Positions 7,701 to 49,295 of a stretch of 64,000 bases of DNA are shown piece by piece. Each line of letters begins with the position of its first letter. Position 1 is the stretch's first letter. Where the stretch lies: NCBI GenBank assembly GCA_965112155.1, contig OZ218102.1; one strand, written 5' to 3'. The position numbers and the translations under genes are program-made. The notes below the pieces were generated by a model. The model had not been told where the DNA came from and did no database searches. It saw only the letters and a program-made list of their open reading frames with translations. The DNA is from Podarcis liolepis. Lineage: Eukaryota.

Positions 7701-7803
7701 CTTCCAAGGAGACCGGCTCAAAGAGTCCAAACTGCTCCAGCACCTTGACGAAGAGGACCAGAACCACCAACACGGCAATCATCTCCAGGCCTTCCAGGTT
7801 CAT
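7701..7803 (-). CDS. KCNIP2: KCNIP2 alternative first coding exon, KChIP2x/KIS-type N-terminal transmembrane segment (MNLEGLEMIAVLVVLVLFVKVLEQFGLFEPVSLE)
   Basis: ATG at 7803 (context ttcaccATG), 34 codons + 1 nt, then GAAG|GTAATG donor (phase 1). The peptide is nearly identical to the mammalian KChIP2x N-terminus as I recall it and homologous to the KChIP4a K-channel inactivation suppressor domain. Confidence 0.95.
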
Positions 7804-8688
7804 GGTGAAGGGGACTCATGGCATCAAGGCCCTCAAGCCCACCCGTGCCTGCTCTCCCAGCTCCTCACTCACCCCAGTTCAGCCAGGGTCACCCACATGC
7901 CCGTGGGTCCTTGTATTCCCTTTGAAACGGTGCTGCTGCTTTCAACCCTGCTGCTGAAGATCAGCCTCCATCAGGAACAGCACTGAGGGCACCTCTGACC
8001 CTCTCCCAAGGGGCACAGAGATTGCTGTGCCTGCTAAGGGGAGAAAAGGGTCACACAGTGCAGGGCAGGGAGTTTGCGAAGTCTGAGGCAGTGGAGTCTG
8101 AGCTGCGCTTGCCTGGCTCACAGAGATGAAAGTGAGAGGGAGAGAGGGAGCGTGGCAGCAGCGCCAAGAGAGAAATGCAAGGGGGGGGGAGAGGAATGTG
8201 TGCAGAAGGAGCCCTGCCCTCCCATCCCATCCCAATGACACCAACACAATCGATTTGCTTAATGCAGCTGCTAAGGAGATGGGAGAGTTAAGAGGATCTT
8301 GGCTTGTGCCCAGGAAAGTTCAGTGCAGATAGGAGGGGGCATTAAACAGGGAGAGACCTTCCTGTGACGCCTCAACATGTCCAGTCCCAGCACTGCTGCG
8401 GGAGGACACCTGTATCTCTCTAGGCACTGCCCTTGCCCATCTCTTGCCGCAGAGGAAACAACGGAGCTTAAAATGTGCAGAGGACAACATACTCTGGAAA
8501 ACTTCAACCCAGCCTGAGAGTCCACCCCAGAACACCCAGCTGAGCAAGGCTAGCCCATATGGTGACTACCAGTTTCTTAATGTTCTTCCCATCATCCTAC
8601 ATGGTTCTCCTTTCTATTTTTTTTTACAATGGTTCTCCTTGATAATTCCACCATCGCAAAGTGCATCCTAGCTGCCTCTGCTTGGACG

Positions 8689-8730
<42 letters not shown>
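8689..8730. repeat. (TG)n microsatellite; (CA)n tracts also at about 11257-11300, 13091-13118 and 24927-24950; (TTG)n at about 41891-41934
   Basis: Direct reading. Confidence 0.95.
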
Positions 8731-8731
<1 letters not shown>

Positions 8732-10664
8732 GGTGGTTAAGAAGTATCATGCTGGACTAAAGGGTGAGGATTGCATAGTATCATAAGACCAAGGGGGGAG
8801 GGTAATGATAAACTAGCTCACTGGGCAGAGAAGGAACACCCAATGCCTGACTTTAGAAGGAATCCCTATCTAAGGCAGCATCCAAGCCTTCAGAATTTCT
8901 TCCCCAATAATGCCCCACAGACGCCAAGGGGAGAACTGGCCTGGGGGTGGAATTCTAGTGCCAGAGGAGAAAGCAGCCTGCTTTGCAGCTGGCAGCAGTC
9001 AGGTATATTTACTGATGTTGTTTCAGCCGCTACCTGTAAATTGATAGCCAGGGCTCAAAGCAGACACTAGAAATACACTACGCACACCAATATTCAGAAA
9101 GCTATTGATTGCCTGGCATGGGGAGGGGAAGGGTTTGTCAAAGGATATAAAAGTAGCAGCATGGCAATAAAAATAGCCTGCCAACACCTGACAGGTCCCC
9201 TACTTGTTCACCTTCTAGATACTTCTATTTATTTTTTCTACTGCCTGACTTGTTGTTTTTTAAATCCACCGTCAGCAAAAATGGCACTAACAAAGACGTT
9301 GCCAAAGGTATGCAAGTTTTTCCCCCAGCCATCAACCTGATTGGCATCTAAAACACCTGACTAGCTTTCAAATCCATTCCTATCCCTGCCTAAGGAGGGA
9401 GAAGAGTGGAGAATGGGAGCATCCAATATCCCACGTACAAGTTCTACTACTTCTGGGTGTCTCCACGACTGTGCCCCAAACTCCTTCAGCCCCAGCTTTT
9501 AGATACCTCCGTTGTGCTGTTGGTGTTCTCCCTTAGCCCTTCTCACCCACCTGGTCTATATTTTTGTCACCACACATACCTAGAAGTGCCCGGATCTTAA
9601 CAGCTTAGTGAGCAGCAGCATTGGCAGTTTCTGACTGGCTAAGCCTTTCACTTGTAGAACTGGATGTGCCTGAACCAGAGTCAAGAAAAATGCCAGGGCC
9701 TGGTGCCAGGATTCAGGGGAGGGGGAGGGCCTGCCCAGGCTCTGCATATTACTCATACCAGCAGAGCCCAGGGGAGGCTGCCAGCCTGGCATTGGCGCCT
9801 GCTCTTCAGATAGACGAAACCTGAAACAAGAGCCCCAACTGTGGCCTGCTGGAAGAGGGCAAGGGTTGCCCAGGCCAATGATTCTCCCATTGCAAGAGTT
9901 AATTCCTTAATCCCCACAAACCATTGGTTATTATCACTCATCAGAGACAACTCTGCACCCCAGTCCAGCCAGCCACTCTTATTACAGAGCAGAAGAGAAG
10001 AGTGCACTTATACCAATGGGATAGTGAGTAGAGATGTCAGTGTATGTGTCATCCTCATCCCTCTAGTCACTTTGCATCTCTTTCCAAACGTTGAGTCCAA
10101 AGGAGAAGAGGAACTGGGTACAGATCCCTGGTGGATCTGGAGGTTCCTCCTACTCTCCCTCACCCCGCCAAACACCATCAGGTCAGGAGATTTTGCTCTG
10201 CACCTCTGCAGGGCTGGATTACGCTAGCCTCGCTCTCTCATTCTGATGCATTCATTCCGTCCGAGAAATCCCTCCTGCCAGGCATAAGCTTTCATGGACT
10301 AGCGTCCACTTCTTTAGATGCACAAAAGTGTTACCCTAAATTGGCAGTACATACACACAGTTGTGGAGAGGAAAGAATATGAGCTGTGAAGTCAGAGGGA
10401 GGTGGGGAAATGAGAGAGCGCAGACTGTAACTTGTACGTTAAGGCTGAGTTAAATGTATGTAAAATCATTAGTAACCATTCACAAAGCAGTGTTGATGAT
10501 GATGCACAGCATCTGTCCTTACAAAAGGGGTAAAATGTGCAAACTCATTTAGCAGAGATTCCCTGTTGAAAGACACAAAGGAATGTGTGGGGGAGATCCC
10601 GGAGCTTGAGCAGCTACACAGCTAAACGCAGAGAGTAGGCCTTTTTGCAGGGAAGCCGAGTGCT

Positions 10665-10736
10665 TTGTTGTTGTTGTTTAGTCGTTTAGTCGTGTCCGAC
10701 TCTTCGTGACCCCCCTGGACCAGGGCACGCCAGGCA
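10665..10736 (-). mobile_element. Extremely 5'-truncated Bov-B (RTE) 3' end
   Basis: Matches the tail of the 18.5-kb Bov-B copy, with a (CAA)n tail and GAGTGCT target-site duplication. Confidence 0.85.
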
Positions 10737-10987
10737 GAGTGCTAACAGGTGCCAAAAGCCAGAGATACTGTTATCTCAATGCAGCCTCAGGACACAACAA
10801 AATCCCACCTCCTCCTTAATGTTCATGTATGTGGGAGGGGTTGGGGAATCTTTGTATGATCCTTGTGACAGTAGGGCTGGCACCCAGGTCAAATACTGTA
10901 TGTAGTGAATTACAACACTAAAAACTACCTCTTGCTATTAGATCAGGATTTATAATTATGTATGTGCATTGCCAACTGTATATCTAC

Positions 10988-11253
10988 AGCTCCTGCCAAC
11001 CTAGCAGTTCAAAAGCACTCCAGTCCAGATAACTAGGTACCGCTGTGGTGGGAAGGTAAGCAGTTTTTCCATGTGCTCTGGTTTCCATCATGGTGTTCCA
11101 TTGCTCTAGAAGTGGTTTAGTCATGCTGGCCACATAACCTGGAAAGCTGTCTTCTGTGAACAAACACCAGCTCCCTTGGCCTGAAAGTGAGATGAGCGTT
11201 GCAACCCCATAGTCACATTTGACTGGACTTAACCGTCCAGGGGTCCTTTACCT

Positions 11254-11255
<2 letters not shown>
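10988..11255 (+). mobile_element. Sauria SINE, 5'-truncated and diverged
   Basis: ctcctgccaacctagcagttc...ggggtcctttacc matches the full-length copies in this window. Confidence 0.9.
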
Positions 11256-11302
<47 letters not shown>

Positions 11303-11688
11303 AATAGGAGACAGAAGCTCTGGAACCAGTAGCCTTCAGACAGATAATGTGAAGGCAGCATTTATCCCCTTAAATGAAAAGCTATTGCAAAGTCAGCCAC
11401 AGTCCACTACAGTCCATACACTCTAAAGTATGGGGTGCTGTCATCCTGCACACTGCTTAGTCCAGCAGCAGCTCCTTAACATAGAATAAAAACTCACAGA
11501 AGTGGAAAGTGTCTATCAAAAGGCAATCTATTCCAGCAGTGAGACAGAATTACGCATCTACCAGCCAACTCCTTTCAAACTAAGCCAAGGTCAGTTTGGC
11601 ACAAAGAGAGGCTGATCTGTTCTCAACCTTGCTGTGCATCTTAAATCCATGCAAACGGAGGCTTGTCGTGTTCCAACTCAGGACAGTG

Positions 11689-11826
11689 TTAAAAGGGCTT
11701 CAGGAAGCTATGGGCACAAGGATGACTAGGGTTGAAGTACCAGAACAGGGTCATCACCAACAAAAGGAGCAGGTCAAAGTAGATGTAAGCCAACACAGCA
11801 ATTATCATCCTGACTATAATAGCCAT
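11689..11826 (-). CDS. Stand-alone 45-aa hydrophobic small ORF (MAIIVRMIIAVLAYIYFDLLLLLVMTLFWYFNPSHPCAHSFLKPF)
   Basis: ATG at 11826 to TAA at 11691-11689, long hydrophobic segment, TATAA-like motifs about 50 and 130 nt upstream on the same strand. No phase-1 donor found. Confidence 0.3.
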   Translation of the reverse strand: MAIIVRMIIAVLAYIYFDLLLLLVMTLFWYFNPSHPCAHSFLKPF

Positions 11827-11989
11827 GAGTTCAGCAACACCAACAGAAGGTTACACCCACAGATTCTTTAGGTAGTTATAAGACACAGAAGTGGGGAGTG
11901 TGACAAGAGGCTCTCTTTGACCTTGCCCCTTCCTTTGAACTTAAATGGACTCTTATAGAAACAAGGGCTTCTTGGCTTGTTTGCACTGT

Positions 11990-13052
11990 GTGCTGAGGGT
12001 CTGTGAGGTGGGTGCTCTTCACATAGATGAAGCAGAACAGGGTGCTCTGCAAGTGCTTGTGTGGTATCCAAGAAGCATCTGGGGAACTTCACCTGCTTAG
12101 AAACCCTCAAGACAATAAACATCTGGCACCAAATTAGTGGTAGCTAGTGGTTTCTAGTGGGGGCTGGCTTGGGACAATGTGCTTCACCCCACCTTGCTTT
12201 GCCAAGAGGATCACATCACTCCCACAACAGCCCACCAGCCACACCTTTGAAACCCGGATGATGAGATGAAGGACAGTCAGGTCACAACACAAATAAAGCT
12301 CAAAAAAGAATCAGCGCAACACTAATGTTTAATTGCTTTCACACTAGCACTCTGCTCAAGACTGCTGCCATCACCACACCATGTATTTAAGCTAATTCCA
12401 TGCAGATAAATAGAGATGGTTCACATACATCGTACACATACGCACAAGAAACTCCAAGCTGATGTGAAGCCTAAGTACTCCTTTCTTATTTAACTCATAA
12501 GGATCTTATGGCCCACTTTACTAAAGAATATTAAGGCAAGCAGGTTAAGTGTATGGGGGTTACATTTCCTGCTCCTATTTCCAGGTATAGTTCGCAATCT
12601 CAGGAGCCAGGTGCTTCTGGAAAGCAATCAAAGCATTCTGATAAAACTGCAGATTGGAACAAACAGCAATATATATGTTATCGCAGTGAGATGAAGAGTG
12701 TTACTTGATCAGCACTTCCAAGTTGTGTCTTGTTAAGCAATGGACTTAGACTGCTGGAGAACTTAAAACATGAGGAGATAACAAAAGACAAACTAAACAC
12801 TTCATTTCTGTGGTTTTTCAATTTTGGTTAATGAAGTTAATATACAGGACATGCATTATTCCCATTTTCTCCAGAATTACTTTTTGTTGTTTAACATGGT
12901 CTTACATGGACGATGCCCTTATATTGCAGGGACATTACTCCCACCTACCCATATTAGATATTTCAGACATGAGAAAATGTGACACTTTCCACAGAAGCAA
13001 TCTCAATAGCTTTGGATGTCTAATGGATAAACAAATATTGCATATGGTACAT
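11990..13052 (+). repeat. Copy 1 of a diverged ~1.05-kb direct duplication
   Basis: Colinear similarity with 16345-17914, e.g. tctggcaccaaattagtgg, accatgtatttaagctaattcca, caatcaaagcattctgataaaactgca. Confidence 0.9.
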
Positions 13053-13087
13053 AGTGAGGAGTAGCAACAAACCAACTATGTGCAATC

Positions 13088-13122
<35 letters not shown>

Positions 13123-16100
13123 GCCTTCCCTGGTTGTGTGCCACAGTTGCTCACCAGTGCAACCTTGGTGTACAAGAGAACATTCAGCTCAGTTTTTAAA
13201 AAAAGAATCCAAAGAGCAACAACATTATCCTCCTCCCTACCATTTAGCTTTCAATTTAAAACAGAATTCACCATGAGGGGAGGGAAGCAATGTACTCCCC
13301 TGGTCTATAACCCATCAGGACCTTAGGAGCCGGTCCTTCTCATATACTCCAGTGATGCTGTTTACATTGATGTGTGAATGGATGAAAATTGATTGCTGCA
13401 TGCACGAGCCAAGACCTGAACACCAACAACCTTCTTTGTGCTCCATTCTGAAGCCACTAATTTTGCTGTCAATATCCAGTCTGGGCTCCCTGCTTGAGGG
13501 GAGGAGACAGCAAGATCCCACAGGCACACACCAGAGTGGCCTCTAGTGGTCAAATGTTATCGCTGCATGAAAACGCGGGCTCCTCCAGAGAGGAAGGTTA
13601 GAATGTGTCTAGTCTTTGTTGAACATTTGTCCTGATCAGTTTATGGGGTGGTTATATGACAATGAGCATTTGTCCTGATTTGCTTGTCCATCTTCCTGTG
13701 TCATTTGTTCGTCTCACACTTTTCAGTGCATTTCCCTGTCACTTTCCTAACAGCAAAAAGTTAAATAAATAAATAGTGATATTTGTGCACTATGTGGGCA
13801 GAGTGCAAACCTAAACTTCCAGTAGGCACTTGAATCCCTCATGCAAAATACTGACATCCTGGAGGCAATCTGAGAATTAGCTACTTTGAAAAGTCCACTT
13901 AAAGAACAAGACCCATAAATTAAGGTCACCCCAGAGCCACCTGTGGGCATACACATACAGGATCATATGACATGATAGTGTTACTCCTTAACAACTATTA
14001 AATACCTTGTTGTTCTCACACAGTATGGGTGATTAAATGCAAAAGATTCCCCACTCTTTCCAGGCATACTTAGAAGGGAGTTGGACTGCAAGCACAGATC
14101 CAGGAATAATTCCAGATTAATCAACAGTGCTGTGATCTGTTGTCCCCATGCCAGGTACTGCAAAGGAGATGTGGGTTAGTGGGATCTCATGCTCCAATGA
14201 TTTATTGTTAACATGTTGTTTGCTTGTTTAGCATTAGTGCTTGGGAAGATTAGTACAAGGTGGATAATACAGAACAAGATAAATAAAAAGAACAAGATAG
14301 CAAATAGTCAAAGCAGAGGGGAACAGAGATTTTGCACATAACAAAGCTACAAAACTACAAAGGCAGGAGAACAAAGGCTTAGTGCAATTTATTCAAGGGA
14401 TTAACGAAATTCTAAATATGGCCAGAATGATATTTGGGAAGATACAGAACAAAACAAAAGCACTGCTCTAAAATGCAGCTTCATTACACCCTCTGGTGGC
14501 TAAAGTCTACCTGGACAACCACAAACAAGAGTTCAGCATCCCTTTGTAGCACATCTTGCTAATCCCTGGCTTCAGATCAGATCTTTCCCCTGCCATGTGC
14601 CAGGAATCTTCTCTCCTTCCTCCATCTGGAAACCTCCCTTGCTCAGGTTTCCTAGCAATAACCAAGGCCAAAACCTTCAGAATTACTAAACAGAACTGTT
14701 TCTGTGCTTCAGGCAGATAAAACCTTTTGAGCTTTCTTTCTTTTCTTTTGAAAAAAACAACACAACACTACTTAATGCACTCGGCTGGCATGAAATCTCC
14801 AAAAAAGTAGAAGACTATTAAAAGCATTTATTATTATTTTTTGTAAAGCTGATCATCTTGTTGTGGAACCACCAAACAAATTTTAAACATCAGAATTTAA
14901 ATTATCTCGCTGCCAACCATCATATTGGCTGTCAAACTCAAAATAGTTTTTCATGAAACATGCACATTCAAACACATATGAAGAACAAGATTCTAAAACA
15001 GATTCATTTAGTTAGAACATTTACTACCTAACATTTCTATTAACAATCAGCAGTGCATTTAAGTTCCGACTCACGCATTGATATGCATTGAAAATGTAAC
15101 CCCTTTGCCACAAAAGGAAAATGACTATTGTTCAGTGGTTTACATAGGTTAAAGTGCCGCAAGTGCTTTTGTTGTTTGTGCTGCAATGGACTCACAGGGT
15201 TAACCTTCTGAAAGGATGTTAAAGATTGAGTAATCCACACTGATTCATACAAAACACACCTTCTACCTCAGAGGTAGGGACCCTGTGGCAGTCCAAATGT
15301 TGTTGGACTCCAACTCCCATCAGCCCCAGCTAGCATGGTTAATGGTCAGGGATGATGGGAGTTGTAATCCAGCAACATCTGGAGGACCACGGTTTCCCCA
15401 TCCCTACTTTACCTCATGAATGTCATATGGGAAATGAGACTGGAATGTAAATGATGCAGCAACTTGTCTGGAAGCACCAGAGACAATAAGGGAGAAACTT
15501 CTTCAAGCGAAGTTAAGAGCAATACTTGCCTACAGAGATCAAGAACCTGGAGCAACTATTCAAACATGTGGACTAAAGTCAAGGAAGAGTCCACATTGCT
15601 GGATCCATCAATGTCTACATATGCAATAAAGTACTTCTCTCTTTAATGTATGTGTAATTTTAAATACACACTCCTTGAAACAGTGAAGGCTTTTTGTTTT
15701 TGTTTTAAAAAAAGGGTTTGCTATTAATTTGCCATTACATATGGTTCCATCTTATCTGTGACCAAGGTGTCACTTGTTGTAGCTGCAAAATTAATACTGC
15801 AAATGCAGAAGCATGCAAAATGACGTATTAGCCTGCTAAGGCTTATCATTGCACCGATTCTCCAATCTAATTCACAATTATTATAAATTCATCTTTGATT
15901 TAGCAAGTCATCTTTCCATGCAGGTGAGCAAAAGAACTCTGGGAAGTCAGGAGAGATAACATTAAAAGGATTTACGACCGAGCCTATTCTTGTCTCTGAA
16001 CGCAGCCGAGCCCTAAATTGAATCACCCTTTCCATTCCCCAAATCTGTAGCATATTAATTACAAAACTATGTAGGGAAATGAAGCTTCAAAGGAAGGCCA

Positions 16101-16344
16101 TGGTTTGGTTGGGATTGTGAAGAGTTAAGCATTTAATCTCACAGGGGTGAATTCTCTGTATTTGGCTGTAGAGACCTTCTGTTCCTACCCTCCTTTTCAC
16201 AGATTTTTCTTTTAAAAATGTTTCTTAAAATAATGAGGCCTTCTATGTGCCTGGTAATGAAGCACATGAACTGTCCAGGGTGCTGAAACGGAAAGCTGCT
16301 CAGATCTAAATGCAAGAGCAAAATTCCTTCTAACACCCTGCATT

Positions 16345-17914
16345 ATTTGTAGGGGTTCTGTGGGGTGGATGCTTTTCAGGTAGATGAAGCAGAACTCAGG
16401 GGATGCTGTGCAAGGACATGGGTGGTATGCAAGAAACATCTGGGGACCCACATCTACTCGGGGACCCTCAAGACAATAATAGTCTGGCACCAAATTAGTG
16501 GGAGCTAGTGACACTGACTTGGGACAATATTCCTCACACCACTGTGCTTTCTTAGCCATAAAATGGCCAAGTGGATTTCATCACTCCCACAGCAGACCAC
16601 CATCCATACTTTAGAAACCTGGATGGTGAAATGAAGGACATGCATGTGACAATGCAGCCTAGAGGAAATCAGGAAGTAAGCAGCCTAGAGGAAATTCAGG
16701 AAGAGAAGGGGAAGTCTGGTAAGATCTGAAGTACAGAACAGCATTATGTAGCAGAGGAATCTGGAACGTAGCAGTTAGCATCGCACTACAGACACAAGAG
16801 ATTCAGGCTTTAAATGTAGGATTGGGCACCTCATGGTTGGAGAAACAACTCCTGCGTTCCTTGGTAGATAGCTTAGCAGGGCTTGGAGGTGGCTCAGCCC
16901 AGGCTTGGGATGTTAACAGTCTAGCCTGATAGGCCTGGGTCTGCCTCACTTCTTCCTCCATATGGTTCCCCCCAGGGAGCAGCAATTTTTCATCTGAGGA
17001 GGACTCCTCTAGCAGAGGCATGACAGAAGGCATGAAGGAAAATGATGCAAAAGACCACGAATAATCACACACCCCTCTTCCTGAATAAGGGAGGCTTAAT
17101 TTTCATGCCCAAATTTAAAGCTCAAAAAAATCTGTGCAACCTTAATTTTTAATTGCTTTCACCCTAGCACCCTGCTCAACACTGCTGACATCGCCACACC
17201 ATGTATTTAAGCTAATTCCATGTACATAAATAGATGGTTCACATGCACCATACATTCCCACCACCTTCCCACACACTCCCTCCCACCCTCACATCCCACA
17301 ACTCGAAACTGATGTGAAGCCTAAGTATTTCTTTTTTATAAGGAGTACACATAAGGATCTCATGGCCCACTCTTCTAAAGAATAGATCAAGCAGGTTGAA
17401 GCGTATGTGGGTTACATTTCCTGCTCTTATTTCCAGGTATAGTTTTATAATCTCAGGAGCCAGGTGCTTCTGGAAACCAATCAAAGCATTCTGATAAAAC
17501 TGCAAATTAGAACAAATGGCAGTATATATGTCATCCCAGTGAGAGATGAAGAATGCTAGTTGATCAGCACTTCCAAGGAACTGTCTACACAAGTTGTGTC
17601 TGGTCAGGCAATAGCAAGAGATAGACTGAATACTTCACTTCTGTGGTTTTTCAATGGCTCACACTTTTCAGGCTCCTTTTTGGTTAATACAGGACATACA
17701 TATTCCACTTTTCTCCAGAATTACTTTTTTTTTTTTTTTGCTGAACACAGTTCACATGCCTTTCATGGAAGATGGCCTTATGTTTCAGGGACATCACTCC
17801 CACACTCCCCCATATTAGAAATATAAGACCTGAGAAAATATGACACTTTGCACAGATGGCAATCTCAATAGCTGTGTATGTTCAGTGTGGACAAACATAT
17901 TGTAGACGGTATAG
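16345..17914 (+). repeat. Copy 2 of the duplication, with a ~450-bp insertion at about 16656-17110
   Basis: Aligns to copy 1 on both sides of the extra segment. Confidence 0.9.
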
Positions 17915-18487
17915 AATTCAGAATAAGCTTCTCTCTCCAGTCTTCTTCACAGCCCCTGACCTATTGTGTCCTAGAACCTGGTGTCCAGCCTTAGTCTTCA
18001 TTTGCCTGCAGCTCTCCTGCCTCAGTTCACAAGTCCATGCTGGCTCCCATGTTGCTGGGAACTGGACACAATTCCAGCACTGGCACATTCATCCAAACAA
18101 CAGCAACTAAAACTTAAATAAGCAGCAAAGGCATCAAAATTACATCCACCCACCAACTCTCAGCTGCCTTGAGTTCACAAAATCATGAATTGGGAGAGAC
18201 ATTGGGGGCCATCAAATCTAACCCCATGGTCAATGCATGAATCTTCTGGGTACATCAGGAATGGGGAAGCTTTGGGTGTGGTCAGGCTCCAACACTTATC
18301 AGCTCCAGCTGGTATGGCCAATGGTCGGGGAAGATGGGAGGTGTTGGACTGCAACTCCCATCATCCTTGAATGACAGCATCCATGAGATGCTTCCTTCCT
18401 TCCTCTCTTCCCTCCCTCCCTCCTTCATTTGCTGGCAAATGTTAGAAACAGGACTTAGTGGTTTTATGAGTGGGTAGGGGTTCTTAA

Positions 18488-18840
18488 TGGTGCTGGAGGA
18501 AACTCTTGAGAGTCCCATGGACTGCAAGAAGATCAAACCTATCCATTCTTAAGGAAATCAGCCCTGAGTGCTCACTGGAAGGACAGATCGTGAAGCTGAG
18601 GCTCCAATACTTTGGCCACCTCATGAGAAGAGAAGACTCCCTGGAAAAGACCCTGATGTTGGGAAAGATGGAGGGCACAAGGAGAAAGGGACGACAGAGG
18701 ACAAGATGGTTGGACAGTGTTGTCAAAGCTACCAGCATGAGTTTGACCAAACTGCGGGAGGCAGTGGAAGACAGGAGTGCCTGGCGTGCTCTGGTCCATG
18801 GGGTCACGAAGAGTCAGACATGACTAAACGACTAAACAAA
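18488..18840 (+). mobile_element. Bov-B (RTE) LINE 3' end
   Basis: Translation RVPWTARRSNLSILKEISPECSLEGQI..KLRLQYFGHLMRREDSLEKTLMLGK..WLD is the Bov-B ORF C-terminus. Near-identical flanks ggggttcttaa/gggattcttaa. Confidence 0.95.
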
Positions 18841-20345: not shown

Positions 20346-20832
20346 ACCTAAGGATGTAAGAAGAGTCCTGCCAAAGGCTCCTGTAGCCCATTTCCTGCTC
20401 TCACACTGGCCAACCAGATGCCCATTATAGGAAACCCAAAAGCAGAACTTGAGTGCAATAGCACTCTCTCCATTTCTGATTCCCAGCAATTCTGATTCCC
20501 TCTAAAAGTGGAGGCAAAGCAGAGGCATCATGGCTAGGAGTCACTGGCTACAAGCCTTCTTCTCCAGGTGCTTGTCTGCTTTTAAAGCCATCCAGGTCGG
20601 TGGCCACGACTACATCTTGTGTGAGCAAACTGCATAGTTTAACTACATGACGTTGTGAAGAAGAACTTTCTTATGTTTGCCTTGAATCTTCTGATGTTGA
20701 GCTTCATTGGATGGTCCTGGAGTTCTGGTATTACAAAAGAGGGAGAAAAAATACTCACTTTCTCCACACCATGTATAATCTTAATACACCTCTTTCGTGT
20801 CCCCTGTACTTTGTCCTTTCTCTAAACTAAAA
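20346..20832 (-). mobile_element. Old CR1 3' fragment
   Basis: Reverse-complement similarity to the 2955-3597 element. Confidence 0.7.
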
Positions 20833-21047
20833 AAAAAAAAAAAAAGGCTGTCCTTCTGGAATGGATTTTCAGCCTCTACAGCAACTGGTACTATCCATTA
20901 TCATAACCAGGGTTGCCATCTTCTTTTTCTTTCAAAAGCACCATCTCCTTCTCAGGTCAGTTTCTCTCTCTCTCTCTCTGCATGTACCTTGCATCCCTCT
21001 CTATGCATGTCCCAGGCACAACTGCCTAGTAGTTCATTGGTCTAGCA

Positions 21048-21371
21048 CATGGGTAGGCAAACTAAGGCCTGGGGGCCAGATCCAGCCCAATCTCCTTCTA
21101 AATCCGGCCTGCGGATGGTCCAGGAAGCAGCGTGTTTTTACATGAGTAGAATGTGCCCTTTTATTTAAAATGCATCTCTGGGTTATTTGTGGGGCCTGCC
21201 TGGTGTTTTTACATGAATAGAATGTGTACTTTTATTTAAAATGCATCTCTGGGTTATTTGTGGGGCATATGAATTAATTCATTTCGCCCCCCCAAAAAAT
21301 ATAGTCCGGCCCCCCACAAGGTCTGAGGGACAGTGGACCAACCCCCTGCTGAAAAAGTTTGCTGACCCCTG
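21048..21371 (+). mobile_element. hAT non-autonomous element
   Basis: CATGGGTAGGCAAACT / AGTTTGCTGACCCCTG termini and a perfect 8-bp TSD GTCTAGCA. Confidence 0.92.
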
Positions 21372-22702
21372 GTCTAGCAGGTACGATTGCAGCCAAAGCC
21401 CATCCCCTCACTCTGTCTGTGGACAGCTCCAAACTAGTCCTTGTCTTCACCTTCACTTTTCTTAATCTGCCGTTTTGTGTATGTGTAAAATCATACTGTG
21501 CAACTGGCAGAAGAACCACCCTGATGAAGCTTCTCAGACAACAACAGAAACAAACTGGTCTGTCAAAAGAACTGAGAACTACAACATGATCCAAAGAATG
21601 GACTGCAAAGTGCCATTCTTTCCTACCCATAACCCCCACCTCCACAAACACTGCTGGCATTACAGAGTGCCAACATGATGGAAAGGAGCACAATATGTCC
21701 TCCAGTCATAAACTGTACGCTAAAGTTCAGCGAAGCTAAGGCAGTGGCATCCATCACATCACACCCACACCAACAACTTCTGGTGCTTATGGAACTCACA
21801 GCACCTAAGACCTATTCTTCCCACTTCAGAACTGGGGAAAGCTAATTTCTCTACTTCTCTATATTGTGAAAATCACTCAGAGTTCAGAATCAAAGGACAA
21901 TTATTCAGGGAGCATCCCATTCAGCAACAGTAACTCCAGAAGTCAACTAGAGCTGAACACACAAAGCATTGATCTCGGAGGCTCAATTCAGAAGCACAAA
22001 GATCATGGTGCTTTCATAATAATTAAGAGCATGTGCAGAGTGCTTTCTCCTACCACCAAGTAACCATAACTAGACACAACACAACTGGGTTTAGATGGGG
22101 GAAAACCCCACCACAGGTTAGAGAATGACATCCTTCTGTGGTTCTCCGAAGTCTCCCTTTAGGAATTTAAGCCCCAAGGCTGTCCATTAGACCACTGGTC
22201 TTCAGCTGGTGAGTTGGGACCCACTATTGGGTTGCAGCCGAATCCAAGGTGGGCCACAACAGGAGCACTACCACCATGCAAATATATGGTAAAAGATTAA
22301 GCAGTAGATCCCCAAATGAATGTTTGGACTAAAAGCGGGTCCTGGGTCTCAAAACGCTGAAGACTACTGCATTAGACCATGTGTTAATTTGGGAACATGG
22401 ATCAGTGCACAGGTATGGGGACCTTATAAGCTGAGGGGAACTGGGTAGCCCACTGCCGACATGTTAAGAGATCAGGGACCCAGGGAAGGAAGAAAAGTGC
22501 AGGTAGAGTAAAGCAATTGCAAAAGAAGAAAATGAGAAGACACTGCGGCTGCAAAGGAGCTGGGAGCCCCTAATCCTTGCTGCCTGCTATGCGGCAAGAA
22601 ACCCCTTTCCTCCCAATTTCCAGCCTTTCCACCTGGGGTTTGCCTTCAGCCCTTCCTTTCCACCAGACACCCTCCACCCCCCCCCCGCAGCCCACAATTT
22701 AC

Positions 22703-22820
22703 CTTCGATGCCACTGAGGATCTTGAAGCACTTGGTCGTGAACCAGTAGGACATGACCAGGAGGATGACGATAAGGGAGGCATACAAGAGGCTGTCACTG
22801 TGTGGCGTTTCCCTCTCCAT
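22703..22820 (-). CDS. KCNIP2: Putative additional KCNIP2 first coding exon with a transmembrane helix (MERETPHSDSLLYASLIVILLVMSYWFTTKCFKILSGIE)
   Basis: Strong Kozak context (gacATGG), GC3-rich codons, 39 codons + 1 nt, GAAG|GTAAAT phase-1 donor. Same strand and phase as the two recognised first exons, with a ~17-aa hydrophobic stretch followed by basic residues. Confidence 0.75.
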
Positions 22821-22982
22821 GTCTCCATGCCAGATGCGTTGCCCCCCCCCTGCTTTCTCTTGGCTCCCCCTGGTCCTCTGCTACATTGGTGCCAGCCTCT
22901 TCCAGGCAGATTCAGAGCCACTCTCGGCCCCGTGCACAAACGAGGCTCCCCAAACCAATTACATTAATTGTTCTCCTTCCAA

Positions 22983-23280
22983 CACATGGCGCCTGTCTAA
23001 AAATAACTGGCTGGCCCGGGGGGAGCCCAGTGGGGTGAGCATTGGAGAAGGGGAAGGTGAACTACTTGGGCAGGATCAGGACCTACTGTGTTGGATCTTC
23101 CTGTGTGAACTCACTACCCCCCACCCCACCCCACAAACAGAGGCCGCCTCTGTCCCACAGCAAGGGTTGCCACCTGGCAGTTTGGGGCTTCTCTCCCCCC
23201 CTCCCCACGGAGCTTTATATATAATGAATGGGAAGATATTAAATTGTGCTTAATTAAACTGCACATTAAATGAATGTGCA
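22983..23280 (-). promoter_or_regulatory. Putative promoter/5' region of the 22820 exon: MEF2 site, E-boxes, TATA box
   Basis: CTAAAAATAA (22997-23006, canonical MEF2 element), CACATG (22983-22988), CACCTG (23171-23176), minus-strand TATATAAA (23221-23214), and TAAT-rich non-repetitive sequence. Confidence 0.5.
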
Positions 23281-24415
23281 GAAGTAGCTGGGTTTCTGCT
23301 TTGCTTTTTGCCTGCTTGAAGAAGCAGTAACTCCCTCCACAGCTCAAATCTCCCCCAAGGTAAGATATGGAGGCCAGGAGTGTCCATCCTCACCTACGGC
23401 AACTTTTTATGGTCTTTCAAATTTAATTCTTACTCACACACACTTCCTTCTTCTCCCTAAGCCAACTGTTTAGAGTAGCAGGGCTCACTGTTCTGAAACC
23501 TTGGTTAGATATCAATACAGAGGTGTTTCGTGCCCCACCCAGGGAGTAAATGGTCGGCAGGGAGCTGCCCTATACTCTCAGACCATTGACTCATCTTGAT
23601 CAGCATTGTCTAGATCAGTCTTCTTCAAATGGGTCCTCAGATGTTGTTGGGCTACAACTCCCATCATCCCTGACCACTGGTTAAGCTGGCTGGGTATGAT
23701 AGGAGATGTAGTCCATCAACATCTGGAAGACACCCCTAGTCTAAATTCACTAGCAGCAGTCCTCCAAGCTTTCTGCCAGGGGTCTACCCCAGCCCTACCT
23801 ACAAACTTTGCTGCAACTCTTCTCCAGGAGGCATGAGATGCCAGTTAAGAAGCACTATGTCTCTGAAGTCTGTATGTGTGCACACATGTGTGCGCGCACG
23901 CATGAGTGTGATCAGTTAAGCTTCACCCACCTCCAGATGCCAAAATAGCTTTGCTCTCAAATTTCAGTAGTGACTGAAGGAAGTGTTTTACTAGCAGTAT
24001 TCATTGCATCAAAGCTGAGAGGCAGCAATCCAGCCTAGTGTTTAAAATGAAGGAAGCAAACTTTCTGGTTAGACAGAACGCTTCCTTAGCTGCAGGTGTT
24101 CTCAGCAACAAACAAACAATAGTTGGCTGATATCAAAGACAGGCATGGGGGAAAGCAATCTCTGTTAAACTAAAGGGGTACCTGGGAGTAACAGTCCAAA
24201 CACTTCATGTCACCACTGGGTAACCCACAGGAATAAACAGTGTCACCTTCTTCCATTTCAGAGAGGGAGAATTTTCCTCCTTCACTCACGAAGTTACTGC
24301 ATTTTTGCAACACAGACAGACCAAGAGGAAACAGGTGTATTTATCCTTAGGGGTCTGCAAGTCTCTCTCTAAACACTAACCAGATATGATTCACCTGAGG
24401 TGCATAAGGACTTAC

Positions 24416-24454
24416 CTTTAACACAACAAAGATAATCCCCCAAATATAAGTACC
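24416..24454 (-). CDS. KCNIP2: Candidate 39-nt cassette microexon (phase 1-1: G-YLYLGDYLCCVK)
   Basis: Acceptor tgctgcatttcag|, consensus donor AAG|GTAAGT, length a multiple of 3, and open in the phase used by the KCNIP first exons. Confidence 0.5.
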
Positions 24455-26668
24455 CTGAAATGCAGCATACACAAGCAACATTGCCTCCTCCCAGCCCTTC
24501 ACCACAATCCTTTTGTGATCTATATGTGAAGCAGATGACAATGTCCAGGGGACTGGGCTCAGTCGCTCACCCTTTGGCCTAATAATACTACTGTATAATA
24601 ATATAGCATCTTCAAATGTTCAAAGCACTTAGGATAACAAGAAACTGCCTTATACAGAATCAGAGCATTGGTCCATCTAGCTTAATATTGTCTACACTGA
24701 CAGTGGCTCTCCGGGGTTTCAGACAGCCTCTCCCTGCTGGGGATTGAACCTGCGACCTTCTGCATGCAAGGCAAATCCTCTACCACTGAGCTATGACTTT
24801 TCTTCGTGTAGCCTGTGTTGTCATAAGTGCACCACTGTGCTGTCACCTTTGCACGCAGTCAGAGTCTAAGAACCAGGTGTCATCACCCCACTTATCTCCC
24901 TCTATATGTAAAAGAAAGCTGTGAGAACACACACACACACACACACACACCCCAGTTCCCTGGCGAGACAGTGCTGGCACTGAGCTAAAATTAAACAGTC
25001 ACCCACCTGCCTGGGTAAAAATAGCAGACAGAGTTGCACATCGGCAAGACTTCAAGCACAGCCACTAATTTTCCATGCCATTGTGAATGTGTGGCCCCAT
25101 GACCCAAGGGCATGGAGTCATATTCTGCAGCCTGCCCCCATCAAGCACTGTGCAGGATGGGTTGCCAGATCACAAAAAGCCATTTGCATTCAGGTGTTGT
25201 TGTTTTTAAAAACCCAAAACTCAGGATAGCTGCCTTCTTCTGCAAGCCCAAGGGAGACTGGCGGTACTTGGAGAATATGACCTGAAGGCTCTGGACACCA
25301 GAGCATCCTTTATCGCTCTTTCCCCAGAAATAAGCCAGAAATGCAGGCAGCATTTTCTGGATACCACACTGTTCAAGACCATCACAAAACACTCTGTCCT
25401 TTCTCAGCAGATTCCCTGATTTGATCTAGAGAGGGAAAAGGTGCTCCCAGGAAGCGCTTGCTCTTTGCCAAGACAGCCAGAACCACCGCAGGGAACAGCA
25501 AGGGAGGCAGGCAACTCCATCAAGGCCTCTCTTTAGGATTCTGACTGTCCTCGAATCAGCTGACTGAGGGAAGAACTGCGTGCCAAGAACAATCCTGCCC
25601 TCTTGACACAAACATTTCCACCTGCTCTTTTCCTAGATACTGTATAACCTTGAGGAGGAGGGAGCACTTCCAGGGAGGGGCTTCTCTCCAGAATCTGTAG
25701 GTAGAACTATATAACTGCGTTATAAATACTGTAACTTTAAGAACTGGTTCCTGAGCTTGCTGTTTCCTTCCTCCCTCCCCACCCTTTTTCCTTCTGTGCC
25801 ATGTCTTCTTATAGAGTCCCTGTCCTCAGGCTTACAATCCTACTACTGGTTATTGTAAGCTGCCCTGGGATCCCATTTATCTGAACAGCATAAATATTAT
25901 ATATATATTCCAACACAATCCCATCTCTGTCAGTTATGGGTTAATTACACATACCTCAGCTTTGATTTCTTTCTGAAATAGGGCAATGGATCACATGGAC
26001 CATTTCATAGTTATATAACAGCAACAGATTCCTTAAAACGCAACTCAGCCAGCAGCGGAACGTGGGTCCTACAGAATTTGAATCTGCCTGCGCCGTCTGT
26101 TCAGCTAAGGCAATGCTCAGGAAATGAGGGTTCATCACTGATGACATGGGCGCCCTTTCCTGCAGCTGGGAGCTCACTCACCTAGATTACCTGGCCTGGT
26201 CAGGCTGATCTAATGATGGCTAATACCTTCTTCTTCTTCTTCTTTTGCTTTATCCATTAGGAGAGTTAAATTTAGGTCACAGCTGAATCTTATTACAGAG
26301 CTGCTAATCAGAGTGGGAGCTGATTATTAATAAAGCACAGCCAAATATTGACAAAAGGCTATTTTTGGCTACAGATGTTACTGTTTCAATCTGGTTAATT
26401 GATCCAGAATCATTTCTCTTCGCCCAGTGTCACAGGGAGCTCCCAGCATTCCAGGGCACTTTTAACAGGAGAGTCTGTGCTTTATTTAGACTGGGCCCAG
26501 CTCTAATGGCATGTGAATGAATAATACAGAAGAGAGCACCTTAGGGCATGTGCAGAGTGCCTTTCATTCATTAGCCACAATCTGCTTCTGCACACCTAGT
26601 CCAGACTGTTTTATTTCATATGCATTAATGCAACTTGCTCTTGACACAGTAATAGTCCATTAGCAGTA

Positions 26669-27011
26669 CAGTGGTGCCTCGCAAGACAAAAAGAATCCGT
26701 TCTGTGATTCTCTTCGTCTAGCGGTTTTTTCGTCTTGCGAAGCAAGCCCATTGACGGATTAGCGCTATTAGCGGCTTTTAGCGGCTTAGCGGCTTTTAGT
26801 GGCTTATCTGCTGATTGGATCAGCTGATTAGCGGCTTAGCGGCTTAGAAAAGGGGGGGAGGGGAAAAAACCAGCAGTAACTCGCAAGACATTGTCGTCTT
26901 GCGAAGCAAGCCCATAGGAAATTCGTTTTGCGAAGCACCTCCAAAACGGAAAACTCTTTCGTCTAGCGAGTTTTCTGTCTTGCGAGGCATTCGTCTTGCG
27001 GGACACCACTG
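26669..27011. mobile_element. Tc1/mariner MITE with internal TTAGCGGC tandem repeats
   Basis: CAGTGGTGCCTCGCAAGAC TIRs and TA TSD; same family as 43321-43673. Confidence 0.92.
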
Positions 27012-30000
27012 TATGTTTATTCTGCTTCATTAGTTGTTCTGCAATGCTTCCCCAAGGCTACCACATTATTGGAGGGGCTACAGTGCAACAAGATAAACCA
27101 GTTTGTTGGTGGTATAATAAGTTATGGGATTTTAGCAGGAAGTTATAGGATAGGCACTGATTGGGAATGCAGCAGTGTGACCACCCCAAAACGTTTGCAA
27201 ACGTTTCAAACAGTACTGAAAGTGGGACTGTGTATTACCACCTAGGTAGCACTATGAATACATGAATGCATGATAAAAATGATGTACTAAGGCCCTAAGA
27301 TTAAGTACAAAGGTTTTATGGGGAAAGAGTCAAACTCTAAGCAGGCTTGTATCCCAGTACCACTGAAGCTCCTCTGGAGCAGGAACAAAGCACTTGCAGA
27401 CCAAATAATAAGGGTGCAGACCCTTGAATCCTAAGGGGAAATATGGTAACAACTTGCATTATATTTAAGAAAAGAAATTGCATTAAATGTAATATAATTT
27501 TACCATTAAAAAAATGCATCTTCTCACTAGTTAATATTAGATGATACCCTTGCTTATGGTAGAGTCCAAAAAGTCACATTCTCATGGCCAAAATTCAGGT
27601 TTTTATTCTTGCAGAAAAAGAGAGATGACATCAGGCCCACCTGAGCTTGGAGTTTGAATCAGAGGTACCTTTCCTTGCAGGCCACTGGCAAACCCCCTCC
27701 ACTAATAAACATGTGTGTCTGGGAGGGGGGCATGATAGATGCAAAAACCTTCCATCCAGCTCCACACTTTATGCCGGATATTGCATAAATATTGGCAGTC
27801 CAAGATTTCAGCAAATCCGGGCTGATACATCAAGTGCCTAGTTGTTGCGATTCGGTCAGTCCCTGGAGAAGCTGCTGCGAGGATACCAGTTGATCCCTCA
27901 CACCAAATATTTTGTTTTGAACCAAGTTAATCTTCTTTCCCACCCTTTACACAAATTGAATCTCTCTTTTCTTGGGGCAATTTGATTAACTGTCTGCAGC
28001 CAGCTACAGGGGAAATGTTCTTAATCTACATTGTCTTTGTATCAGGTAGGAACATTAGGGGAGCAAACCCCATTGAGCAGCATGTTCCGTGAACGGGTGG
28101 AGTCATTTAAAGAGGCAGAGCCAGGGAAAGACGTCTGGGGGGAAATTCCATTTGTTTTAACAGGAAGCAAAGAAGCCAACTTTCCCCTTTGCACCTGCAG
28201 TATTTGATTGGAAATATCCCAATTCTCACAAGGATTTCACCACGGTGGAACAAACGACACTGCACTTAGGGTGAGACAAAATGTGTGTGTGGCAGGAAGA
28301 AGGGCTTTTTGCAAATGCTTTTCCCACTGGGGTGGGTGTTAAAAGGGGTGATGGCCCTACCGCCCTGATAAGCACTCTCCCTGCCATCCCCAGAGCATAT
28401 TGAGAGTGAGGATAATGTGATGCAGGAAACACTACTCTCGCTATGAATTGGCTTGACAGTGTTTGCACACAGCCAAATCAAATTGGCTGCATGACATCAT
28501 CTTGCTGAATACATACTCTCCCTCCCCACCCCAAACTGACACTGAAACATCAGTTGATCAGGCAGCAAAAAGCCTGGGAACAGCAGTGAAAGGGGTGGAC
28601 AAAGGGGACTTGGGTGGAGACACTTCAGCACCCTAAAAGTGCTACTTTTAAACAAACAAAAAAGTTCACACGTGAACAGTTGGCACAGATGAAATCAGAA
28701 TACCAGAATTCATATTTTCTAGTGTTTGCCACCCAAGCATGGGTGCACCTGTGTTAAACATAAAGTCAAACATAAAGCATACAGCCAAAGTGGCTTTAAA
28801 TCTTGAGAAGAACACAAGCTGCTGGCTAAACCTGATGGTTCTGTTTCTGTTTGCCTCCGTTAAACCTCAACCATGGATGCTGAGCTAAGGTAGACTGACA
28901 AATTCTGAGTGCCTTGGCTCCAGAGTAAACTAAAGTTATTCATTCCTGACTAACCATAAATGCCTATTGCATGACCTAGGAAAACTGAGGCATGGCCCAT
29001 GAGGAACTTGTCTTGATCCTCAGGCAAACACAAGGATGACTCTAATATGCCAGTTTTAGGGACTTGGGTGCTACAGCCAATGGCACATAGGACAAAATGC
29101 ATCCTTCTGAATATGCATTATGAATATACACCTGAATATGCACCTAAGCTCTGATGCCCAGCTGTGAAATGAACTTTCCTGACATATAGTATGGGAAACT
29201 GGCAAAGTAGGGCAGAAAAACCAATGGTGTCCTCTTTCTACCTGGGCAATCAGGTAGTGTGTGGTGTGGCTGACAGGGCATGGGGCTTGGAGAACAAGGA
29301 GTTCAGAGCTGAAATACATTTTCAATCATTACTATTCAGTTACATTAAACCAGGGGTGGAGGACCAGATGTTGCTGGAGGTCAGGGATGGTGGGAGTTGT
29401 AGTCCAGCAGCATCTGGAGGGCAGCAGGTTCCCTACCCCTGGGTTAGGTACTTAAACAATAAATGGTATCATTACTATTTTCCCAAGGAGATCATCATTA
29501 CAGCAAGCACACTTTCAGCCCAAGGGCCTGGCATCATTTAGAATCTCAACTTCACTCTCCAAGAAATGGGCTTAAGTTCAATAAGTCCTCATGGTAAACC
29601 AGAGCTATCGTAGTCATCTCCCGCAGGCAGGTAAGTTCCACCCATATTCAGTCCATCCACAAGTTAGGCTATTTCTCTGCCTTCCTCAAGAAGATACACC
29701 TATCACAATGAAATTTACAAAACTCAAGACTGGCACCCGCTAAATACAGAATTAGCATCACTAGGGAGTGAAGTTGGGAGATACATAATGCAGCCCTTGG
29801 TGCTCCTCAACTTTTCAGCGATCAGTGCTAGCATCCTACCAAACTGTTGCGTGTGACTCTGGAAATGGCAGAGACAGCTCCATGCTTCAGAGCAATGTGC
29901 CACTCATTGGGTCCAGAAATAGGCTGGGATGGACAGTGAATGCAGGAGGAAGTACCATCTTGAAATACTGAGCCCAGGTCTAGTAGGGGAGAGCTGAAAG

Positions 30001-31210
30001 CGAGTTTGACCACCTCCACTGGGCAACTTGACCCAGCGACAGAAATCCTTTGAATATTCACTGAATTCTAGAGACCAACAAGCAGAGGGAATATGTTGGG
30101 GCTGTGATTCTTCCTCAACTCAGTGAGCTTCTAGATCAGGAAAGGATGACACCAGAGGAGAACCATTTGAGATTTAACTAGAAAAGGAGGACAACACACA
30201 TTAGAAGTGGTGCGGGGAACTTGTAGTACTCCAAATGATGTTGAAGTAGAATTCCCATCATCCCTGACTATTTGCCTTGATGATGGGAACTGGAATCTAA
30301 CAAGATCTGGATGGCCACAGGCTCCTCATCCTTGCATTAGAATGTGAACTTAAATCATGACTCACTCTTTGCCCCAAACCTACGCCTGGGAAGCACAGGA
30401 CACTGAAGGAATGGAGAAAGGCTGTTGCACATTGGGACAGGAAAAAGCTGAAAAAAGCCCAGAATCTCTGCATAAGGCTGGACTCTGCTCGAGCTCAACC
30501 ACCTGAGGCTTGCTTTTCTGGGTCAGGTAATAGGAATAAGCATGAAGTTTGGGTGCACAGATCAAACGGCATCAGCTCCAATACGAAGTAATGGGCTCCA
30601 GTCCAACTCTCGGTGCTTCTGCTGGGTACATATAATTCTGTTTGCAGAGCAGAGCTTCCATCTCTCTGCAAAGAGGCCTTTTACAGGGTGGGGTGGAAAT
30701 GGGCCGTGGGAGCCAACACATTAAATATGCCTCATGTTTAAAGCAAGAGAGTCTGAAAAGGGTGTGATGCAGGAACGATTTCTTCCCAGCCAGCCCTGGA
30801 GCTCCCAGCAAGGTTGCAGAAAAACCCAGCCACCAATTCCAAGGACCTGGTTGGGGGTCCTGGCCCTGAACCAGAACAGAAGTGTATGTGTGGAGGCGCA
30901 ACTGAAACTCAGTGTGACTCCATCATCTCTCAGGCATGTCATTTTGGTGCCCAGGATCCCCAGGCGATTTTCATTCTGGACTAGCCACATAAATTTTGTT
31001 TTCTTCTTCCCCTACTCCAAAGAGGCAGGATGACCTACAACTAAAGGGGGGAGAGAGAGACAGATTGCTCCCCCCTTGTGCTTCACTGCAGAGCCCATGG
31101 CTTTAAAGACCACCCCACAAAATGCTCATGATCTCTAGCCATCTGCCACAGTTCCTTGCCATGCCAACTCCAGAGCCCACCCCTCCACCAGAAGCCCGGA
31201 AGCAGCCTAC

Positions 31211-31298
31211 CTTGAGACAGGGTCCCCGTGACCAGCTGGTAGAAGAAACGGATCGCCCGCCCCAGCTGCCTCTTGCACCGTCGCTGGCAGTGAGTCAT
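31211..31298 (-). CDS. KCNIP2: KCNIP2 alternative first coding exon, KChIP2e-like basic/Cys N-terminus (MTHCQRRCKRQLGRAIRFFYQLVTGTLSQ)
   Basis: ATG at 31298, 29 codons + 1 nt, CAAG|GTAGGC donor (phase 1). The CxxRC...YQLVTGxLS pattern matches recalled human KChIP2e (MNRCPRRC...YQLVTGSLSP) and the paralogous KCNIP1/KCNIP4 MSGCxKRC exons. Confidence 0.92.
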
Positions 31299-33666: not shown

Positions 33667-34653
33667 CAGTGTTTCCCAACCTTTTTTGGGCAAAGGCACA
33701 CTTGTTTGATGAAAAAAATCTCGAGGCACACCACCATTACAGCCCCGTGACGTCAGCGCGCAGCGTCACGCCGGGAGGGACGCACGAAAGTGTAACTTTC
33801 AATTTTTTTCCCTCCCCCTTGCCGGGGAACCTCCAAGCTTTGGGGGTGGGGGGGGAGGAGGCAGCAAAGCGAGGGACTGAGGGACTCCTCCAACGACAAG
33901 GGTTGGGGAAGAAGAGAAAGGGCTATTCCGCTCCAGTCACGGGAGGGGAATATGTACTGGCCCAACTGGTGTGCGGTCTTCGGAAAGCCTAGGCTCGGGG
34001 TCCACCGACCTCGGCGGAGAAAGGCAACAACCGGAGCCAATGACGAGCCGGCGCGTGCGTGCAGCGGCTGGCCTCGAGCTCGGGAAGCTGCGCGCGGCGA
34101 TGTTGACGCGGGGCGCGTGAGAGCTTGGGGGCGGGGCGGGAGAGAGAGAGAAAGAGTTGGCAGCACCAGGCGCTGTTACTTATTGCGCTGCGGACGCTGC
34201 CAGCAACTGCGGTGGTTGTGCGGCGGCCACCGCCGCAGAACGTCCTCGTCAGTCAGCTGAGCTGCCTGGCGGCGTAGGGAGCCGAGGGGCGGGGCTTCCT
34301 TTCTGAAGGAGCTGAGGGTGGGTGTCCTCCGGCACCTTCGGCGAAACGGCGCCGGCCCAGAGCGCTTCTAGGAGGCTGCCTTTGTGCGCGACCTAAAGCC
34401 CTCTTTCCCTCCCTCCAGCCCCGTGTCACATGTGGAAAAGGGGGCTGGATCCAGTGACGCAACTCGGAAAACTGTTAGGCCAGGGAAGCCAGAGCAGGAA
34501 AGTGAGTGGGAGGCGGCGTCGCCGCTTTAACCCACGTTTCCTTTTTGAAAGAGAAACCAGTGTTTCCCAACCTTTTTTGGACTCGCCCGCCTCCCTCCAG
34601 GCAACATCTCGCGGCACACTAGTGTGCCGCGGAACACCGGTTGGGAAACACTG
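33667..34653. mobile_element. Young hAT element with a CpG-rich interior and an internal extra left end
   Basis: Perfect 15-bp TIR CAGTGTTTCCCAACC and perfect 8-bp TSD AGATAGAC; it splits a tRNA-derived SINE. Confidence 0.93.
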
Positions 34654-48987: not shown

Positions 48988-49044
<57 letters not shown>

Positions 49045-49047
<3 letters not shown>

Positions 49048-49231
49048 CTTTTCGAGGCTATACACCACACCTCCTCAACAGTATTTATAGGAACTCAAAC
49101 ACTGAGATCCTGCTCTGTTCCAGTAACAAGAAGCCGAAAGCACCAGCCTGAAGATGACGAGTGAGACCTCGTCGAAACGTCGCCTAGACACCCCAACTCT
49201 TACACGGGAAGACACCCGAAGACACCAAAAC

Positions 49232-49234: not shown

Positions 49235-49295
<61 letters not shown>

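Follow-up and report, generated by a model that had tools for sequence, protein, structure and literature searches.

The N-termini of KChIP proteins decide the surface arrival and the inactivation of Kv4 channels (I_to / I_SA). Transmembrane KChIPs (tmKChIPs) with a KIS domain were reportedly described by Jerng and Pfaffinger in 2008. An alternative-first-exon architecture has been described for all four KCNIP genes, and the mammalian catalogue comprises 17 variants, the KChIP2 ones being 2al, 2a, 2b, 2c, 2g, and 2x (PMC3973911). The KIS-type tmKChIPs have the endoplasmic reticulum (ER) retention motif LIVIVL and differ at residues 19–21, which are VKL in KChIP4a, VKV in KChIP2x, and IAV in KChIP3x; for KChIP4a, the N-out/C-in orientation was shown experimentally (PMC3973911). 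KChIP4e is a 'considerably different' tmKChIP with a predicted transmembrane segment at residues 10–32 (PMC3973911) and with 'LLH' at the VKL position (PMC3973911, PMC7269670). In rat hippocampal interneurons, the choice between KChIP1 and the KChIP4e isoform was correlated with the firing type (PMC7269670). Here we describe a window of 64,000 nucleotides (nt) from the lizard Podarcis liolepis (contig OZ218102.1 of assembly GCA_965112155.1), in which the minus strand very probably carries the 5′ portion of a squamate KCNIP2 (KChIP2) gene, including three first coding exons, A, B, and C in this order, each of which excludes the other two.

The whole 64-kilobase (kb) window was free of N, and the exon coordinates were read directly on the minus strand. 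Exon A (31211–31298) starts with the ATG at 31298 in the Kozak context aCCATGa and consists of 29 codons (MTHCQRRCKRQLGRAIRFFYQLVTGTLSQ) followed by a G at 31211 and the donor AAG|gtaggc. Exon B (22703–22820) starts with the ATG at 22820, has 39 codons (MERETPHSDSLLYASLIVILLVMSYWFTTKCFKILSGIE) and a G at 22703, and ends at the donor AAG|gtaaat. Exon C (7701–7803) comprises the ATG at 7803, 34 codons in total (MNLEGLEMIAVLVVLVLFVKVLEQFGLFEPVSLE), a G at 7701, and the donor AAG|gtaatg. All three end in phase 1. The first-pass annotation of this DNA had claimed three ATG-initiated exons on the minus strand (31298, 22820, and 7803) with phase-1 G|GTA donors, and on direct reading this was exact. 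The same pattern was counted throughout the window as ATG-initiated open segments of 18–70 codons ending with G|GT in phase 1 at a donor that scored 7 bits or more. Of such segments, the minus strand had 20 and the plus strand 17, and the bare phase-1 ATG/donor pattern is no commoner than chance. Since the pattern is common, evidence for exons must come from homology, and it is homology to annotated KChIP2 N-termini by which exons A, B, and C stand out.

The peptide of exon A is basic and amphipathic and contains two Cys residues; its helical hydrophobic moment was highest at residues 6–23. It was identical in 25 of 29 positions to the N-terminus of KChIP2 isoform X8 of the barn owl Tyto alba (P0047), where it is joined directly to the core sequence DSVEDEF. 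The N-terminus of the Turdus model P0006 showed the same identity (25/29), and no match was found in PDB. By position and type, exon A probably corresponds to the mammalian KChIP2g/KChIP4d class. Human KChIP2g presumably begins with a similar peptide (...RRC...YQLVTGSLSP).

Exon C had the strongest hydrophobic segment, with a Kyte–Doolittle mean of 2.81 over residues 6–22, and carried LVVLVL at residues 12–17 and VKV at residues 19–21. Against PDB, it matched the KIS domain of KChIP4a (3dd4_A; E = 2e-9) with 25 of 29 residues identical. The N-terminus of isoform X7 of Tyto alba KChIP2 (P0046) agrees with it in all 34 residues, and DSVEDEF follows directly there. Two out-of-frame ATGs precede the exon C start codon (about 7824 and 7819, within 7804–7826); one of them opens an upstream reading frame of 2 codons, and the other overlaps the main ATG.

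The assignment of the locus to KCNIP2, which had been claimed before, was borne out by the N-termini of the Tyto alba and Cygnus olor KChIP2 isoforms, identical to exon C in 34 of 34 positions, to exon A in 25 of 29, and to exon B in 30 of 39. Paralogues can be told apart by their core sequence, which is DSVEDELEMATVRHRPE... in the KChIP4 type and DSVEDEFELSTVCHRPE... in KChIP2. The core exons are outside the window, so the paralogue was assigned without a direct reading of the core, and the locus could belong to another KCNIP gene, for example KCNIP4, whose KChIP4a exon closely resembles exon C (25/29 identical in mouse). We consider this very improbable. The complete match of exon C and the 25/29 match of exon A are to isoforms named KChIP2 by NCBI; exon C has VKV, the KChIP2x state, vs. 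VKL in KChIP4a; and exon B was found only in models named KChIP2. The core of the bird proteins bearing exon B, when compared with PDB, gave the best score with human KChIP2 (346 bits), followed by KChIP4 (311), KChIP1 (282), and KChIP3 (274).

A scan of the window for an EF-hand core exon gave no hit, in agreement with the earlier proposal that the core lies beyond position 1; the common downstream exons, i.e., the optional exon 2 and the EF-hand core, are located there. The way in which the first exons are used was seen in bird models (P0026, P0027, P0025, P0046, and P0047), in which the first exon joins the core at ...E/Q|D-SVEDEF. These joins uphold the idea of interchangeable phase-1 first exons on one core. 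The lizard order, with A at 31.3 kb, B at 22.8 kb, and C at 7.8 kb, agrees with that in other species: the alligator and Turdus models have A followed by B, those of Hirundo and Bambusicola (P0021/P0024) have B followed by C, and in owl isoform X3 exon C leads into exon 2, the junction being ...PVSLE| followed by the exon 2 residues.

Exon B was the least familiar of the three. When its surrounding stop-free frame was used in a word search, a single Logan open reading frame (ORF) was returned, P0001, in which all 39 exon B residues were identical, while the preceding 40 and the following 21 residues differed. Judging from these sequences, P0001 belongs to another squamate, and selection there appears to be confined to exon B. 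When 1.84 billion representatives were searched exhaustively with phmmer, ten matches had E < 1e-10, namely P0001 and nine bird-type ORFs. The latter have in common a near-identical block, MERTSLHNDSLLYASLIAILLLISYWFTTRCFKIISGIE, with 30 of 39 residues identical to the lizard exon. In eight of the nine, the block runs from Gly into a differing read-through intron; the ninth, P0004, continues with a different peptide. No sequence of a mammal, amphibian, or fish was returned by this search or by the second word search described below. This does not prove that they lack exon B, since isoforms are merged in clusters at 50% and a query of 39 amino acids (aa) needs about 40 bits in a library as large as this.

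A second word search, with residues 1–40 of one of the bird-type ORFs as the query and proteins of 100–327 aa eligible, gave 21 proteins, of which 20 had the bird block (98–100% identity) and one was an alligator model. Among those carrying the block were KChIP2 isoform X6 of Tyto alba (XP_032850107.1), KChIP2 isoform X2 of Cygnus olor (XP_040419226.1), and a UniRef KCNIP2 entry of Phasianus colchicus. The model of Alligator sinensis (KChIP2, XP_006033818.2) has a B-type exon, and the alligator also has an A-type exon. The three bird models (Tyto alba, Cygnus olor, and Phasianus) splice exon B as ...SGIE|DSVEDEFELSTVCHRPEG, i.e., straight to DSVEDEF. The block is not among the 17 mammalian variants reviewed (PMC3973911). 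Exon B had no PDB or KIS match, and ESM Atlas gave only sub-threshold clusters of short hypothetical proteins. A peptide-fragment search of 8.4 million papers found no occurrence of any of four peptides, those of exons A, B, and C and of the 39-nt cassette discussed below, and a search for non-mammalian KChIP2 variants found nothing relevant. Exon B is functionally uncharacterised in the literature found, yet it is already predicted in bird RefSeq models.

Several features were observed around exon B. A G9 homopolymer lies at 22842–22850, about 20 nt upstream of its ATG; a related-species contig is 2 bases shorter at this site, and the alignment of a same-species contig breaks there. The region 22900–22990, about 100–170 nt upstream of the exon, contains a TAAT-rich element, caattaatgtaattgg, a possible promoter or homeodomain site. 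The 100 nt upstream of exon B are partly conserved in the squamate ORF P0001 (about 65% at the amino-acid level). In the models P0006 (Turdus) and P0028 (Alligator), the frame of exon A continues into a longer form of exon B (...TLSQ|DSTAGLPVGTGHGA-MERTS...), which would make B an internal exon there. The same arrangement was considered for the lizard and rejected, since only weak purine-rich acceptors in the proper phase were present upstream of the ATG.

The best 17-residue window of exon B had a Kyte–Doolittle mean of 2.22 (residues 11–27). Its flanks are acidic on the N-terminal side (E2, E4, and D9) and basic on the C-terminal side (K30 and K33), and KIS motifs are absent. This fits a signal anchor in the N-out/C-in orientation, as in KChIP4a. 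The second type of tmKChIP is marked by a predicted transmembrane helix that begins at about residue 10 and by the lack of KIS motifs. A second transmembrane type, as had been claimed, is present in the form of a predicted non-KIS transmembrane segment, which the list of mammalian KChIP2 variants does not include (PMC3973911). No KChIP4 protein was returned by phmmer with exon B among the 1.84 billion representatives. The similarity of exon B to the KChIP4e peptide is, as we take it, weak. We suggest only tentatively that exon B constitutes a fifth tmKChIP class that has no known mammalian counterpart, a KChIP4e-like non-KIS anchor on a KChIP2 core that has been conserved for approximately the whole of sauropsid history (lizard, alligator, and birds). 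Within KCNIP2, it could represent the ohnologue of the exon of KChIP4e.

The following mode of action may be proposed for the locus. Each exon begins with an ATG of its own, lacks a usable upstream acceptor, and has a single G in phase 1 as its last nucleotide. Activity of an alternative promoter before one exon would give an mRNA joining that exon to the common downstream exons, and any first exons lying further downstream, having no acceptor, would be removed as part of an intron. The single G would complete the Asp codon and give ...|DSVEDEF; because of this common phase, the exons would be interchangeable on one core. The outcome would be one Kv4-binding core with different N-terminal modules for membrane association. 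By analogy with described isoforms, the exon A form would be peripheral and possibly palmitoylated via its two Cys residues, the exon C form would confer ER retention of the KIS type and slowed inactivation, and the exon B form would be a membrane anchor resembling that of KChIP4e. In both transmembrane forms, the core would be held at the ER or the plasma membrane with the N-terminus in the lumen, as in KChIP2x/4a and KChIP4e, and both would be expected to alter Kv4 trafficking and inactivation. The identity, phase, order, and conservation of the exons were observed directly, as was the splice product in the bird gene models, and from these we infer the separate promoters, the expression in the lizard, the membrane topology, and any effect on Kv4.

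A number of observations weigh against the use of these exons, and of exon B in particular, as proposed. None of the exons A, B, and C lies in a CpG island, and the bird isoforms are computational models. Among proteins of 100–327 aa, none from a squamate carried exon B. Reads from two bulk RNA-seq runs labelled with this species, of unstated tissue (about 12% of each), were placed on positions 21000–26000 only, a stretch that includes exon B and the cassette. The depth was zero at both, and only high-copy repeats were covered; the stretch contains no exon that could serve as a positive control, and the zero depth therefore speaks neither for nor against expression. Two small runs, X1 (with the same species label) and X2 (another species), gave contigs of 151–194 nt over 22692–22973. 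These were considered as a sign of exon B expression and rejected: they reach 4–11 nt into the intron and are therefore unspliced, they are of read length, they were picked by the word search, and they resemble duplicated DNA reads. Finally, an out-of-frame ATG is located 8 nt before the exon B start codon (22826–22828, minus strand). A frame opened there would meet the exon B donor in phase 0 and could not continue into the core. As suggested by the P0001 residues ...GYGDM, this upstream ATG seems to be retained in the related squamate.

With its strong context, the upstream ATG could pre-empt the exon B ATG. Exon B could then be a conserved relic or a regulatory sequence that is untranslated in the lizard, or its use could be restricted to archosaurs, and both the zero depth in two RNA runs and the lack of an annotated squamate protein would agree with this. 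We regard such an explanation as unlikely. The ATG, the frame, and the donor of exon B are all intact; the peptide is identical in 39 of 39 positions in a second squamate, in which both flanks have diverged; and the differences between lizard and bird are conservative (I/V/L/M and K/R), which indicates purifying selection on the peptide. The RNA result was obtained without a positive control. A translated first exon joined to the KChIP2 core thus remains our preferred reading of exon B.

The stretch used for the placement of reads contains high-copy interspersed repeats at 21000–21500, 23505–23838, and 24507–24840, which were heavily covered in the DNA-like and RNA runs. The repeat at 23638–23725 is a hairpin with 33-nt arms (85% complementary), and many read joints of the 'opposite strands' type fell at 23664–23681.

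The first-pass annotation had also counted a phase-1-compatible cassette of 39 nt among the anchors. Such a segment does exist at 24416–24454 of the minus strand. It reads tttcag|39 nt (G)YLYLGDYLCCVK|gtaagt, with the codons GG TAC ... AAA G, and is compatible with phase 1 at both ends; when entered in phase 1, it is translated as GYLYLGDYLCCVK. The donor scored 12.2 bits and the acceptor 5.9 bits. The cassette stands out solely by the strength of its splice signals: it was unique at its joint splice score in 128 kb (both strands), whereas a Markov model predicted 0.05 per 31 kb, with a threshold set post hoc by the candidate itself. It could be a genuine lizard microexon between exon A and the core, adding an aromatic di-Cys segment that might be palmitoylated. 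In favour of this are the perfect donor (AAG|GTAAGT), the tttcag acceptor, the open phase-1 frame, the uniqueness on either strand, and the position outside the high-copy repeats, with zero depth at the cassette and deep coverage of the neighbouring repeats. We find this unlikely: the score threshold was post hoc, the word search found no protein relatives among eligible proteins of 36–114 aa, no reads fell on the cassette, and it is absent from all eight bird KChIP2 isoforms compared. Its place among the alternative N-termini was thus not confirmed, and the cassette is an unsupported candidate.

The di-Cys palmitoylation anchor of birds is a different element, namely the conserved exon 2 of 32 aa, which lies downstream of exon C, as owl isoform X3 joins C to it. 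The cassette and this real di-Cys exon are without homology and have only the Cys–Cys pair in common. Neither the bird exon 2 (from P0049/P0045) nor the bird canonical exon 1 had a match in the window by tblastn and regular-expression scans. Since exon 2 is unmatched there, the palmitoylated Cys–Cys exon lies downstream of position 1.

Only two CpG islands were found in the window, at 33.75–34.75 kb and at 49.5–50 kb. The first (33751–34750; GC content 0.65, observed/expected CpG ratio 0.9–1.0) lies 2.4 kb upstream of exon A. It was examined as a possible canonical promoter with exon 1 and rejected, as it contained no KChIP-like ORF. Perfect inverted repeats of 15 nt, CAGTGTTTCCCAACC and GGTTGGGAAACACTG, bracket the island at 33667–33681 and 34639–34653, and a third copy is present at 34558–34572. 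A microsatellite of the (TA)n type, translated as IYIYIY, at 49000–49260 adjoins the second CpG-rich region (49501–50000; GC content 0.55, observed/expected ratio 0.80), in which no recognisable coding content was seen.

Taken as a whole, the locus is largely an ordinary alternative-promoter array that has already been annotated, and exon B is the only element beyond the mammalian catalogue. The array had been presented as larger than the mammalian set; this holds for exon B, which is outside the mammalian KChIP2 variants, and does not hold for exons A and C, which match known types. As a novelty of lizards, the array cannot be maintained: A, B, and C are all in NCBI bird models, and the alligator has A- and B-type exons. 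The second transmembrane KChIP2 variant in lizards, crocodilians, and birds would be an addition to the 17-variant mammalian catalogue, and exon B may be a useful marker for reconstructing the ancestral array of KCNIP first exons. If exon B is the ohnologue of the KChIP4e exon, then the ancestral vertebrate KCNIP gene had first exons of the 2g/4d, 4e/B, and KIS types in the same order, and in mammals the B-type exon of KCNIP2 was either lost or never annotated. The heart and brain of reptiles and birds would in this case have a Kv4 regulator without a mammalian counterpart.

Among the described systems that come closest is the set of KChIP2 isoforms predicted in birds by NCBI Gnomon (Tyto alba X3, X6, X7, X8, X12, and X13; Cygnus olor X1, X2, and X4), with the same A, B, and C on the same core. 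The bird models differ from the lizard window in having, in addition, the canonical exon 1, the Cys–Cys exon 2, and two short first exons, none of which matched the window. The last two, MGAQCRFALRST and MGSAPAPWCELIPPGRK, are the very short first exons of Tyto alba X13 and X12 (P0043 and P0044), joined to DSVEDEF. Exon A is orthologous to the first exon of bird KChIP2 isoform X8 and, like those of KChIP2g (CCDS7525) and KChIP4d, is an alternative first exon that is short and basic, contains Cys, and joins the core with no exon between them. Exon C is the same exon as in the tmKChIPs KChIP2x/4a/3x (PMC3973911; PDB 3DD4): it starts with MNLEGLEM, becomes hydrophobic at residue 3, carries LVVLVL where LIVIVL is otherwise found and VKV at residues 19–21 as in KChIP2x, and ends in phase 1 before DSVEDEF. 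We see no material difference from the KIS-type tmKChIPs; exon C is the squamate orthologue, with a protein sequence identical to that of the barn-owl exon. Exon B has the same layout as KChIP4e, i.e., about 10 polar or acidic residues, a hydrophobic helix of about 17–20 residues, a short linker ending with E, and a phase-1 junction, and both lack KIS motifs. It differs from KChIP4e in being found only in sauropsids and in standing on a KChIP2 core, not a KChIP4 core.

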